Source: Neoconidiobolus thromboides FSU 785 (Eukaryota > Fungi > Entomophthoromycota). From it: a stretch of 64,000 nucleotides of DNA. The stretch's first letter is position 1, and each line of letters starts with the position of its first letter. The notes under the pieces were generated by a model. It saw nothing but the letters and a program-made list of their open reading frames with translations. It had not been told where the DNA came from and did not search any database. Below are positions 34,403-50,986 of the stretch, one piece after another. The DNA is taken from positions 6,034 to 70,033 of the forward strand of contig MU626370.1 of the NCBI GenBank assembly GCA_025603075.1. The letters run 5' to 3'. The position numbers and the translations under genes were made by a program.

Positions 34403-34694
34403 TTAAGCAGAGTTACATTTCTCACATTCTTTCATATCATCAAATGGTCCACATAATGGATCTTCAGCATCAACTTTAACACAACCATTGGTAGTAGCTA
34501 TATACTGATAGGTATCAATCTTGCAATCCCCAGGTCTAGCTGAAGATAAGCATAATAAAGCTCTATTTGAAAGTTAATATGGTTAATAAGTTGAATTTAT
34601 GTTTATACCTGTCATCTTCACTGATGGGACTTAAAGCTGCAACGGTGCTTAAACCAAGAAGTAAAGATATGAAGTTATTTTTTTTGATATACAT
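34403..34694 (-). CDS. 81-aa secreted 6-Cys microprotein, BPTI/Kunitz-like (missed by ORF track)
   Basis: Exon 1 34694-34609, 46-nt GT-AG intron 34608-34563, exon 2 34562-34403: MYIKKNNFISLLLGLSTVAALSPISEDDRALLCLSSARPGDCKIDTYQYIATTNGCVKVDAEDPLCGPFDDMKECEKCNSA*. Confidence 0.75.
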
Positions 34695-34992
34695 AGTTTG
34701 ACGGTTAATACAAAAATAAAGTTTTTTTCCTAAAGCTTTATAGTCTTTTTAAAAAACATAAGGTAATTATTGGTTTTAAAATCAAGTTGATCATTAAAGA
34801 TATCCTAATTCTAAGTTGAAAATTGAAAATCAAACATATTAAATTACTTTTTTTATTCTGACAGTTTATCACACCCTGATTTAATATTTGCAAAATAGCA
34901 GTTCATCCTATGCTTGAAAATAAAATAGTATTTTTAAAATTATTAAAATTATGTTTGTATACACTTAAACTAAGCTAATCGAAATAGCATAT

Positions 34993-35585: not shown

Positions 35586-38462
35586 TCACATCAGTGAGCA
35601 ATCTTTTTTCTCCTTTTTTTCTTTTTTCTCCTTCTTGGAGTCCGAGTTATTTGAAGAATATGTGAAATTTGTGTCGCCATAGTTTGTGCTTGCTAATTTA
35701 GAATTATATCCGTTTACACTTCCATTATAAGTTTGGGTATGAACGGATCCTGGTTGTGAATGTATAAGGTTTTGATACCCCTGTGTTTGAGACTTATTAC
35801 GTGATTTTTCCATTCGCTCTTTTAATTCTTCTAACCTCTTTTTAGCTGGGTCAAACCCTTGATTAGCAGCAGATTCATAACAGCGCATTGCAGCCTGCAT
35901 ATCTTTATAAAATACACCTTCCCCCCTTTCGTGGCATGCCCCTAAGTTAAACATAGCAAATGGAGATCCAAGGTCAGCAGCTTTAGTATACCATTCAACT
36001 GCAGAAAATGAGTCTTGTGCAACCCCTCGACCTGTTTGATAGCATTGGGCTAGATTAGTCATTGCAGAAGCATTATTTTGCTTCGCCGCCATTAAATAAT
36101 ATTCAAATGCTTTTTCAGGGTTTATTTCAACACCTTTACCAGCGGAATAGCAAGTTCCTACATTCGATTGTGCATCTGGGTTACCTTTATCTGCTAGTTT
36201 CAAATAACATTTAAAGCTTTCTTGTTCTGAGGGTTGAACGCCCAAACCATCACGATAGCACGAAGCTAAAGCTAATGTAGCTTGTGAATGCCCTTCTTCG
36301 GAGGCATGATAAAACCATCTAAAGGCTTGTATATGATCTGCTTGAACTCCGTTTCCGTTAAAATAACATGATGCCAACATATACATACCTTCGGATTGTC
36401 CAGATTCGGCAGCAAGTTTTGAATAATGGTAACCAAGGTCATTGTTTACACTGGTTCCTTGGCCTTTAAGAAAACACTGAGCCAATGCACATTGAGCACG
36501 TGCGTTACCCTGATCAGCTGCTCTTCTAAACCATTCAAGTGCTTGATTAGAATCCTTTTCTACACCATGGCCCATGAAAAATGAAATAGCAACTGACCTT
36601 TGTGCTCCTGGATGTCCTTGTTCAGCTGCTTTACGGAACCATTTATAAGCTTCTTCATAAGATTGTTTAACTCCCCTACCGTTTGCATAACATTCACCAA
36701 GATTGTGTTGTGCAGCTGGATTGTCCTGCATGGCTGCCTTTTTAAACCATCCAGCAGCCTCTTGTCTATCTTTAGGTGCTCCAAGGCCAAAGTAATAACA
36801 TGAACCAACATTATTTTGAGCACGAGCATGACCCTGGAAAGCTGCTTTACGGAACCATTTAAGGGCTTCCTCATCATCTGGCAATAAACCTATACCATGT
36901 TTATACATAATACCAAGAGAAAATTGGGCATCACTATGTCCCTTTTCTGCGGCCTTTAAATATAATTCATGGGCCTTGGTATATTCTTTATCTACACCTT
37001 CACCGTTATAATAATGGTATCCAAGTAAGTAAAGTGCTTGAGGGAACTCTTTTTCAGCGGATGCTTTCAAATAAGAAATGGCTTTCGAGATATCTACAGG
37101 TACCCCCAACCCAAGAGCATAACATTCTCCAAGAGAACATTGGGCGGCTGGGGAGCCTAAACGGGCAGCTTTGTTAAATAAAGCCAATGCCCTTGAATTA
37201 TCCGGATCTTCAACTCCATAGCCAAACCTATACATAATACCTAAGCGAGTAATGCCCTCAAGGTTACCTAGATTTGCAGCCTTTTGATAATAGTTTAAAG
37301 AAGCACGATAATTTCTACTTAAGCGTGCACCTTCGAAATATAAAGTCCCAACGGCCATATAAAAATCACCCAAATCATCGTCAGGATCCTTCTTCACAAT
37401 AGCAAATAAATCATCCTTAACCCCTTCATTTTCTTTATCCTTTTCAAAATGAGTTAATAACACTTCAAATTTATTTTCATCAATTGGACCAAACATGCCG
37501 GTTTTAGTGTTTAGTGAAGTGGGCTCATAAAATTTAGTCCCAAAAATAGTTCCAAGATCTTGTGCATCAGCTGCATGAATGTTTGTTTCATATAGCCCCA
37601 TTGAGCGCTTAAGAAGTAGTCCAATTTCATCAGCATAGGGTCTCATCACTGGATCTGGGTGTTGACATCTACGCATTAAACTTTCATAATTTGGGGGAGT
37701 TGTTGGTGGAACATCTTCAATTATACCTTCTTGCTTATAAAATCCAATTTTAGAAACATCGGCCGCTTTTTGGTAAGGCCTCATACATGCACTAATTTCC
37801 CACATAACTACCCCCAATGCATAGACATCGGTTTTTTTACTTGGTTCTACACCAAATTTTTGAAAAATTTCTGGAGCCATCCATAAAGGGGATCCAGCAC
37901 CCATAAAAGTGAGTCCTTGTGTCATGCCTATATCTTTCTCAACACGACAAACACCAAAATCGGCAATCTTCGCTCTTAAATTTTCGCCATCAATTTCAAC
38001 TAACACATTATCTGATTTTATATCACGATGAATAATGTTTTTAGCATGAATAAAGTCCAATCCAAGCGCTATTTCCATTGTTAATTTTTGACGAGTAGCC
38101 CAGTTGTACTTATGAAAGTCGTTTTGAATTAATTTAGCCAAATCTTTACCATTAACATATTCCATTAATAAACAGGTACGGTTTTTATCATCAATACAGG
38201 TACCTACAAATTGAACAATATAAGGCGAATGTCCCAAAGTGGCTAAAGTTTTTGCTTCAAGTTTTAATGAAGCTACTATCTTTTTCATTTTATTGACATT
38301 ATCTCCATTCATATTTAATTGTTTCATAGCACATATCATACCAGCATATTTTACTAGGTAAACCGATCCGAAGGCACCTTTCCCTAACTCCCTTTCTTTT
38401 GTTACAAGGTTAAAATCAATGGTTTCATGAAACTTTGCAGCTGTTGCTTGCATAGCTTGCAT
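35586..38462 (-). CDS. TKL-type protein kinase + 14 SEL1-like repeats + polybasic tail + CaaX (CSLM), paralogue 3
   Basis: GKGAFGSV, AMK, HRDIKSDN, DFG, WMAPE; 14 SEL1 repeats; ends KKEKKEKKEKKDCSLM*. Confidence 0.93.
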   Translation of the reverse strand: MQAMQATAAKFHETIDFNLVTKERELGKGAFGSVYLVKYAGMICAMKQLNMNGDNVNKMKKIVASLKLEAKTLATLGHSPYIVQFVGTCIDDKNRTCLLMEYVNGKDLAKLIQNDFHKYNWATRQKLTMEIALGLDFIHAKNIIHRDIKSDNVLVEIDGENLRAKIADFGVCRVEKDIGMTQGLTFMGAGSPLWMAPEIFQKFGVEPSKKTDVYALGVVMWEISACMRPYQKAADVSKIGFYKQEGIIEDVPPTTPPNYESLMRRCQHPDPVMRPYADEIGLLLKRSMGLYETNIHAADAQDLGTIFGTKFYEPTSLNTKTGMFGPIDENKFEVLLTHFEKDKENEGVKDDLFAIVKKDPDDDLGDFYMAVGTLYFEGARLSRNYRASLNYYQKAANLGNLEGITRLGIMYRFGYGVEDPDNSRALALFNKAARLGSPAAQCSLGECYALGLGVPVDISKAISYLKASAEKEFPQALYLLGYHYYNGEGVDKEYTKAHELYLKAAEKGHSDAQFSLGIMYKHGIGLLPDDEEALKWFRKAAFQGHARAQNNVGSCYYFGLGAPKDRQEAAGWFKKAAMQDNPAAQHNLGECYANGRGVKQSYEEAYKWFRKAAEQGHPGAQRSVAISFFMGHGVEKDSNQALEWFRRAADQGNARAQCALAQCFLKGQGTSVNNDLGYHYSKLAAESGQSEGMYMLASCYFNGNGVQADHIQAFRWFYHASEEGHSQATLALASCYRDGLGVQPSEQESFKCYLKLADKGNPDAQSNVGTCYSAGKGVEINPEKAFEYYLMAAKQNNASAMTNLAQCYQTGRGVAQDSFSAVEWYTKAADLGSPFAMFNLGACHERGEGVFYKDMQAAMRCYESAANQGFDPAKKRLEELKERMEKSRNKSQTQGYQNLIHSQPGSVHTQTYNGSVNGYNSKLASTNYGDTNFTYSSNNSDSKKEKKEKKEKKDCSLM

Positions 38463-49852: not shown

Positions 49853-50986
49853 ATGAAGTTCACTACTAAACTTCTGGTAGGTTTACAAGTGCTCAATTAT
49901 TATGCTCAAACGGATAATAGTCGGTCCAGTGATACTCCTCAAGCTCGTATCATTGGTGGAGAAAAGGTATCTGAACCATGGAAATATCCCTTTATGGTAT
50001 CCTTAAAGAAATCCAATTTTCATTTATGTGGTGGCACTTTATTGAATCAAAATCAAGTAATTACAGCAGCCCATTGTACAGGTACTGTGGATAAGTGGAC
50101 AGTAACTTATGGTATCAATGATTTAACTAAAAAAGAAGGTGAAGAAAGCTATTCTGGGGTCAAAGTCGAAGTAAGAAAAGTAGCTAAAATAGTTCGTCAT
50201 CCAGATTATAATGGAGATACAGATGATAATGATGTAGCTGTCTGGACCTTAGATTCACCATTTAAAAACTTTAAACCAAGTATCAAATTAAATGAAGATG
50301 CTAATATTTATAACAAAAAAGTATTAGTCTTAGGTTGGGGTTTTACTGCTGAGGGTCAAGATCAAGCTACTCGATTTTTAAATCAAGCCTTTATTACTTT
50401 GTTCCCTCAATCTCAATGTAAAGATTTGTATAAAAATATGAAGCTTCGATCTTATGATAGTAAGAAACATCTATGTGCTGGTGAACTTACCGGGGCTAAA
50501 GATGCATGCCAAGGTGATTCTGGTGGTCCATTAATCCTTGCTGATACAATGGAATTGGTTGGTATCACCAGCTATGGCATTGGTTGTGGTCGTAAAGAAC
50601 GTCCTGGTATTTATACTAATCTTTTAGAATATTCTGCATTTATTAAAGAAAATTTGATGAATAATAACACCGATAAACCTAGTGAATCTATTCAACCTAG
50701 TCAAACTACCCAAACTATCCAAACTACTCAGTCTACTCAATCCACACAACTTACTCAAACTAGTAAAAGTACCCTCACTGCTGCCCCAACCGCAACAAAA
50801 CCAAAACCACAAACAGCATTTTCTACCCAATGGTTTACTATGGGTCCAAGACCAACTCGAATTAATGATGATCCATGGAGGAATCTACCCAATGGATGGG
50901 AGGTTCGAACTGTACCATTAGTACAAGCCCAGCCAACTTATTATTATCCACAACAACAACCTCAATACTATTATTATTATTATTAG
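49853..50986 (+). CDS. Secreted trypsin-like serine protease (S1A) with Thr/Gln linker and Tyr-rich tail
   Basis: R|IIGG activation site, CGGTL, TAAHC, DNDVAV, DACQGDSGGP (S1 Asp = trypsin specificity). Confidence 0.95.
   Translation: MKFTTKLLVGLQVLNYYAQTDNSRSSDTPQARIIGGEKVSEPWKYPFMVSLKKSNFHLCGGTLLNQNQVITAAHCTGTVDKWTVTYGINDLTKKEGEESYSGVKVEVRKVAKIVRHPDYNGDTDDNDVAVWTLDSPFKNFKPSIKLNEDANIYNKKVLVLGWGFTAEGQDQATRFLNQAFITLFPQSQCKDLYKNMKLRSYDSKKHLCAGELTGAKDACQGDSGGPLILADTMELVGITSYGIGCGRKERPGIYTNLLEYSAFIKENLMNNNTDKPSESIQPSQTTQTIQTTQSTQSTQLTQTSKSTLTAAPTATKPKPQTAFSTQWFTMGPRPTRINDDPWRNLPNGWEVRTVPLVQAQPTYYYPQQQPQYYYYYY

Follow-up and report, generated by a model that had tools for sequence, protein, structure and literature searches.

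An 81-residue, cysteine-rich protein encoded by Neoconidiobolus thromboides FSU 785, an insect-pathogenic entomophthoralean fungus of aphids and thrips, resembles a Kunitz/BPTI domain without conforming to its canonical pattern. This raises the questions of whether the protein belongs to the Kunitz superfamily, where it came from, and what it might bind. We analyzed a window of 64,000 nucleotides (C113:6034-70033) from the assembly of this strain, which comprises 24.6 Mb in 799 contigs, and compared the candidate with the remainder of the genome and with protein, structure and sequencing-run databases.

Gene model and genomic context

The candidate gene lies on the minus strand and consists of two exons and one intron, giving an 81-aa product with six Cys (Table 1). 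A preliminary description of this DNA had arrived at the same product by removing a 46-nt intron, and we reproduced the product, its signal peptide and the Cys spacing x8-x13-x9-x8-x2 from the sequence and its translations. The residue after the second Cys is Lys. That description had also called the gene hidden, which was mistaken, since the protein is already annotated at NCBI as a hypothetical protein (KAI9293828.1, K502DRAFT_350607) that is identical over 81 aa. The splice junction agrees with the NCBI gene model, and a protein word search with exon 2 returned one match, P0001, which is the same entry (81 aa, 100% identity).

Judged by eye, the signal peptide in exon 1 has a basic n-region with KK, followed by a 13-residue hydrophobic core, and V-A-A precedes the likely cleavage site. 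The 5′ end of the intron is GTATAAAC and the 3′ end is AAATAG, with a TTAAC branch-like motif inside. The predicted splice rests on the annotation, the reading frame and an intronless homologue, P0004, described below. The GC content of the exons is 34-36% (33.7% in exon 1) versus the much lower value of the intron given in Table 1 and 11-22% in the flanks; the neighboring genes have 36-40%.

At the DNA level the locus is single-copy in this genome. The gene is flanked by a convergent gene for alkaline phosphatase and by a kinase/Sel1-repeat gene, an AATAAA overlaps its stop codon, and a TATAAAG motif upstream of the ATG may possibly be a core promoter element. Two other genes of the window were noted. 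The one directly upstream of the candidate is an intronless ORF of 958 aa with an N-terminal protein kinase, a long Sel1-like repeat array and a Lys/Glu-rich tail. The other, on the plus strand, is an intronless ORF for a secreted S1A trypsin-type protease in which the motifs of the catalytic His, Asp and Ser are present; it also has a long Thr/Gln-rich linker, and its tail ends in a run of Tyr and Gln.

Table 1. Positions of the candidate gene, neighboring features, Kunitz loci of the genome and contigs carrying the homologue. Plain numbers are positions in the window.
Feature	Location	Strand	Remarks
Exon 1	34609..34694	-	ATG at 34694; 28 codons and the first 2 nt of a split Arg codon
Intron	34563..34608	-	Phase 2, 46 nt, GT..AG, 19.6% GC
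Exon 2	34403..34562	-	52-aa six-Cys, Kunitz-like domain and TAA stop at 34405-34403
TATAAAG motif	34736..34742	-	Seen in the sequence, 42-48 nt 5′ of the ATG
Kinase/Sel1-repeat ORF	35586-38462	-	958 aa
S1A trypsin-type protease	49853-50986	+	
Second locus	L026:454-746 (~26950-27250 of C97)		Profile match at C97:27090-27203
Degenerate Kunitz-like fragment	L019:1252-1419 (C27:159251-159418)		Near contig end
Canonical Kunitz domains	Contigs C3, C93, C104, C131, C139, C155, C172, C187, C309, C459, C478		PF00014
Kunitz gene examples	L005:808-1662, L010:902-1492, L010:2855-3445		PF00014
P0004/P0005 Logan contigs (L020-L025)	Runs ERR15949627, SRR28201154, ERR15947882, ERR15950213, ERR15949139, SRR28201022		

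A single homologue

An exhaustive HMMER search of 1.84 billion representative proteins yielded a single genuine relative, P0004, a protein of 73 aa with 45% identity over the domain. P0004 has retained all six Cys and a signal peptide, the latter fused directly to the domain with no intron. The motifs GDC, TYQ, PLCGPF and K-E-C-x-K-C-N are common to both proteins. Two further proteins, P0002 (1279 aa) and P0003 (1503 aa), were rejected as spurious, being long repeat proteins whose scores were summed over the repeats and which lack the Cys framework. Word searches with exon 2 or with the family alignment found no further family members, and the JGI metagenomes returned nothing by degenerate pattern or by exact 32-mer.

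The sequences P0004 and P0005 (73 aa, intronless) lie on contigs of ~1.2 kb with 17.5-18.4% GC, assembled from six sequencing runs. Each contig is a circular permutation of one 1227-bp unit, and three have a 30-nt terminal overlap, which indicates that the unit is tandemly arrayed or forms a small circle in a very AT-rich source organism. The DNA of this unit had no match in the N. thromboides genome.

Sequence tests of the Kunitz relationship

The resemblance to BPTI/Kunitz domains proposed in the preliminary description stood in part. Formal membership fails: Pfam scans of exon 2, P0001 and P0004 gave no PF00014 match at E≤10 (the gathering threshold of this model is 21 bits), and no other Pfam domain was found in either exon, P0001 or P0004. 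The candidate locus was not among the 32 genome matches to PF00014 at E≤1, nor in the genome list obtained with a profile of the fungus's own Kunitz domains, in the latter case because the first filter let no more than 35 candidates through. A profile search of PDB sequences returned no Kunitz chain, and an ASIC2 match from that search was set aside as a chance match. The Cys spacing is divergent, as had been noted before, with only the first spacer fitting the canonical arrangement of approximately x8-x15-x7-x12-x3. Residues F33, Y35, G36-G37-C38 and N43 (BPTI numbering) belong to the core of the Kunitz domain, and none of them has a counterpart in the candidate.

The tests that support the relationship use the Kunitz domains of the same fungus. 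We built a local HMM of 57 model positions from 31 translated PF00014 domains of the genome, and it aligned the candidate over positions 4-54 with 14.1 bits (E 2.5e-6 as a single test). None of 3000 shuffles of the candidate with the Cys held fixed reached this score (mean 0.2, sd 2.2, maximum 11.9), which means that residues other than Cys contribute to it. When every stop-to-stop frame of 30 aa or more in the six frames of the window (757 in all) was ranked with the same HMM, the candidate came first with an E of 0.0026, and the runner-up had an E of 0.14. Extrapolated to larger search spaces, the E of the candidate would be ~1 for the six-frame whole genome and ~0.03 for a proteome of an assumed ~10^4 proteins. 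Comparison of the candidate with 29 own-genome Kunitz domains by hhalign gave a probability of 89.6%. By BLASTP, the best of 31 own-genome Kunitz comparisons was with the second domain of a two-domain Kunitz protein (25.8 bits, E 2e-6, 30% over 50 aa).

The homologue adds little to this picture. P0004 alone scored 5.1 bits against the own-genome HMM, a value reached by 62 of 3000 shuffles, and a profile of the three family sequences gave an hhalign probability of 87.4%, so that adding the homologue did not raise it. This weak match and the lack of gain are the main reason for caution on the Kunitz relationship. The nearest named ESM-Atlas clusters, which are tick proteins, all carry PF00014, with values of 0.76-0.78 that lie below the reliability line and serve as a lead only.

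The resident Kunitz family, its introns and an extra Cys

The genome itself proved to be rich in Kunitz domains. A PF00014 search gave 32 matches, spread over 12 or more contigs; 30 matches exceeded the Pfam cut-off (Table 1), and the presence of at least 30 resident canonical domains considerably changes the prior for a Kunitz relationship. The proteins that carry these domains are secreted and have one to three of them, and several are encoded as neighboring gene pairs. Most of the units have eight Cys. One of the two extra Cys lies in a C-K-V extension ~20 residues before Cys1, and the second lies 3-4 residues past Cys38 and is followed by xx-F-x5-Cys51. The P1 residue is mostly Arg, with Lys, Phe, Tyr, Ala, Met, Ile, Leu and Cys also occurring.

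Two features of the candidate match this family closely. A short phase-2 intron separates the signal peptide from the domain in all four of the intron-bearing Kunitz genes that we examined. In two of these (on L012) three residues lie between the split codon and Cys1, which is exactly the layout of the candidate, and in the other two (on L002) there are four, one more than in the candidate. The second feature is the fourth Cys of the candidate, which in every alignment method falls in the column of the extra Cys and not in that of Cys38; its spacing C4-xx-F-x5-C5 is the same as the one that, in the resident 8-Cys units, leads from the extra Cys over F to C51.

Like the fungus's own Kunitz proteins (e.g. 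K502DRAFT_326631), then, the candidate has a signal peptide and a phase-2 intron just ahead of Cys1. Its domain also has in common with theirs the Cys1-x8-Cys2 segment, with a G ahead of Cys2 and a basic residue after it, the Y-x-Y motif of a strand, Cys3, an F placed five residues ahead of Cys5, and a predicted hairpin and helix, with Cys5 and Cys6 in the C-terminal helix. Unlike them, it is not detected by PF00014, has lost two residues after P2′, has no FGGC38, carries its fourth Cys at the fungus-specific extra-Cys position, and has x2, not x3, between Cys5 and Cys6. The Cys of the N-terminal extension found in the 8-Cys units is also absent.

A horizontal or convergent origin, as suggested in the preliminary description, is unnecessary given so many canonical domains in fungal-style genes of the same genome. 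Independent horizontal acquisition of the candidate was rejected on its intron position and its lineage-specific Cys position, both common to the resident Kunitz genes. On the origin of the family as a whole, a word search with a two-domain Kunitz protein was uninformative, returning only same-species paralogues.

Predicted structure

An AlphaFold2 model was made from the three family sequences with no Kunitz rows in the alignment. It has a hairpin (18-23/26-31) and a C-terminal helix (43-51), in the element order of a Kunitz domain. The first 24 PDB matches to this model by Foldseek were all Kunitz chains (TM 0.5-0.57, E 0.8-4), among them dendrotoxin K, TFPI, TdPI, BPTI and textilinin, and VIA-align on the matched Kunitz chains gave Z of 2.1-3.1. 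In a PDB scan independent of Foldseek, covering 48,161 representatives, Z≥2 was obtained for 20 chains, and 20 of 20 were Kunitz (Z 2.0-3.1). Structure prediction with Foldseek had been put forward earlier as a check for the 1-6/2-4/3-5 disulfides. With regard to the fold, its outcome was divided: the matches were exclusively Kunitz, but the model has a pLDDT of only 62.6, no E was below 0.8 and no Z exceeded 3.1. Absolute scores are low and a Z of this size is weak, yet the restriction of the matches to Kunitz chains is informative.

A second AlphaFold model, with 26 own-genome Kunitz domains in its alignment, is circular. Its pLDDT of 82.7, Foldseek probability of 0.99 and TM of 0.63 were obtained with Kunitz rows in the input, and because of these the model shows compatibility with the Kunitz fold only. 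It contains a beta-bridge between residues 9-10 and 36-37 that is compatible with a pairing of Cys 2 and 4 but does not establish it.

A probable diverged Kunitz-family binder

We propose, with a probability of about 0.65, that the candidate is a diverged secreted binder of the Kunitz family, derived from the fungus's own expanded Kunitz/BPTI family. The sequence comparisons and the predicted structure support the Kunitz relationship but do not prove it. After removal of the signal peptide, the mature protein would have ~55-60 residues and consist almost entirely of one domain, a strongly diverged descendant of the resident family that would retain the N-terminal loop, the beta-hairpin, the C-terminal helix and Cys 1, 2, 3, 5 and 6. 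In the simplest history, a fungal 8-Cys unit would have lost the Cys of the N-terminal extension and Cys38 together with the GG motif. The fourth Cys of the candidate may then pair with the equivalent of Cys14, giving a disulfide-shifted Kunitz domain with the predicted map 1-6, 2-4, 3-5. Because the mature protein is almost entirely one domain, it would be expected to work extracellularly, as a small and rigid module for binding, most likely of a protease. More tentatively, and at somewhat less than even odds, the candidate may represent a new disulfide-shifted Entomophthorales Kunitz subfamily that binds insect hosts in the manner of effectors or toxins rather than inhibiting trypsin.

The alternative that weighs most is that the candidate is an unrelated, lineage-specific small secreted Cys-rich protein in which the Kunitz-like Cys pattern and layout are convergent or coincidental. 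The absence of a Pfam or PDB sequence match, the non-canonical Cys spacing, the poor match of P0004 to the Kunitz profile, the structural scores, each of which is non-significant by itself, and the tiny size of the family all fit such a protein. It would not account for a profile score that is carried by non-Cys residues, for PDB matches that are exclusively Kunitz from a model without Kunitz input, or for an intron phase and position and an extra-Cys position common to the fungus's own Kunitz genes, and we judge this explanation to be unlikely. The candidate does share with generic fungal small secreted Cys-rich effector candidates its size, signal peptide, even Cys number, narrow taxonomic range and lack of a Pfam domain. 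It differs from them in that we can propose both a particular fold and a family of origin.

Possible functions

A protease is the default target of the Kunitz fold, and the candidate could be a standard-mechanism inhibitor of the trypsin type, with a P1 Lys, that blocks the clip-protease/prophenoloxidase cascades of insects or the fungus's own trypsin. The preliminary description had placed Lys at P1, and this was borne out: the Lys after the second Cys falls in the P1-equivalent column in every Kunitz alignment. Most of the canonical Kunitz domains of this fungus likewise have Arg or Lys at P1, and the secreted S1A protease of the window (Table 1) has Asp in its specificity pocket. In conidia of C. 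obscurus, a related aphid pathogen, expression of two annotated Kunitz genes is strongly raised (PMC9026835), which fits a role of the family at the host interface and is not specific to the candidate.

Against inhibition, the P1 Lys is replaced by Asp in P0004, the only intact homologue, and at P1′, in place of a small residue, the candidate has Ile and P0004 has Val. Two residues are deleted just past P2′ and the secondary binding loop GGC38 is replaced, so that neither the conserved canonical binding loop nor the 36-38 secondary loop of Kunitz inhibitors is found in the candidate. The trypsin gene lies 15 kb from the candidate and shows no sign of linkage to it. We judge inhibition by the standard mechanism to be rather unlikely; roughly, a working trypsin-type inhibitor would take up about one third of the probability that we assign to a diverged Kunitz-family binder.

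Dendrotoxins and other Kunitz toxins have lost protease inhibition, and by analogy the candidate might be a Kunitz-derived toxin-like peptide, or one that binds a receptor or channel, in which inhibition has likewise been lost. The strongly remodelled binding loops and the P1 residue, which is not conserved, would suit such a peptide, and the best structural matches include dendrotoxin K, anntoxin, huwentoxin-XI and a cone-snail Kunitz toxin. The structural matches do not separate toxins from inhibitors, however, and to our knowledge a function of the Kunitz-toxin type has no precedent in fungi; we regard this possibility as distinctly improbable.

Comparison with remodelled Kunitz proteins

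In TdPI, anntoxin and the conkunitzin-type toxins, a small Kunitz fold accommodates remodelled loops and altered disulfides. The tick tryptase inhibitor TdPI (2uuy/2uux) was among the best matches to the candidate model, with a TM of 0.55 and 26% identity, and anntoxin (2kcr) gave a Z of 2.9. All of these come from animals and show no link to the candidate at the sequence level, and their altered disulfides differ from the change that we propose for it.

If the proposed reading is true, one of the hypothetical proteins of a fungus that attacks aphids and thrips joins the Kunitz superfamily and provides a natural case of disulfide relocation within a very small Kunitz fold, which would be of some interest for studies of protein evolution and scaffolds and for listing entomophthoralean effector candidates. 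The general picture is unchanged, as annotated Kunitz genes were already known from this group of fungi (C. obscurus, PMC9026835).

A decayed second copy

A search of the genome with the family profile detected a second locus on contig C97 (E 1.6e-4; Table 1). It has a signal-peptide exon, an intron and a domain exon, as in the candidate, but with a stop codon at the position of the first Cys and with four further Cys of the six lost. As read from its sequence, this locus is a decayed paralogue of the candidate. The intact state of the candidate beside this decayed copy, together with the conserved homologue P0004, argues that the candidate is under selection.

That the 81-aa frame is no gene at all, but a product of chance or an artefact of annotation, is extremely improbable, for although the region contains ten alternative in-frame GT..AG pairs, it would leave unexplained a homologue with the same six Cys and a signal peptide, an exon/intron GC contrast typical of coding sequence, and the decay of the C97 paralogue while the candidate stayed intact. 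The candidate is a real, single-copy, two-exon gene.

One other degenerate sequence was seen in the genome, a Kunitz-like fragment near the end of contig C27 without equivalents of Cys38 and Cys51 (Table 1), which is probably a pseudogene or an exon remnant.
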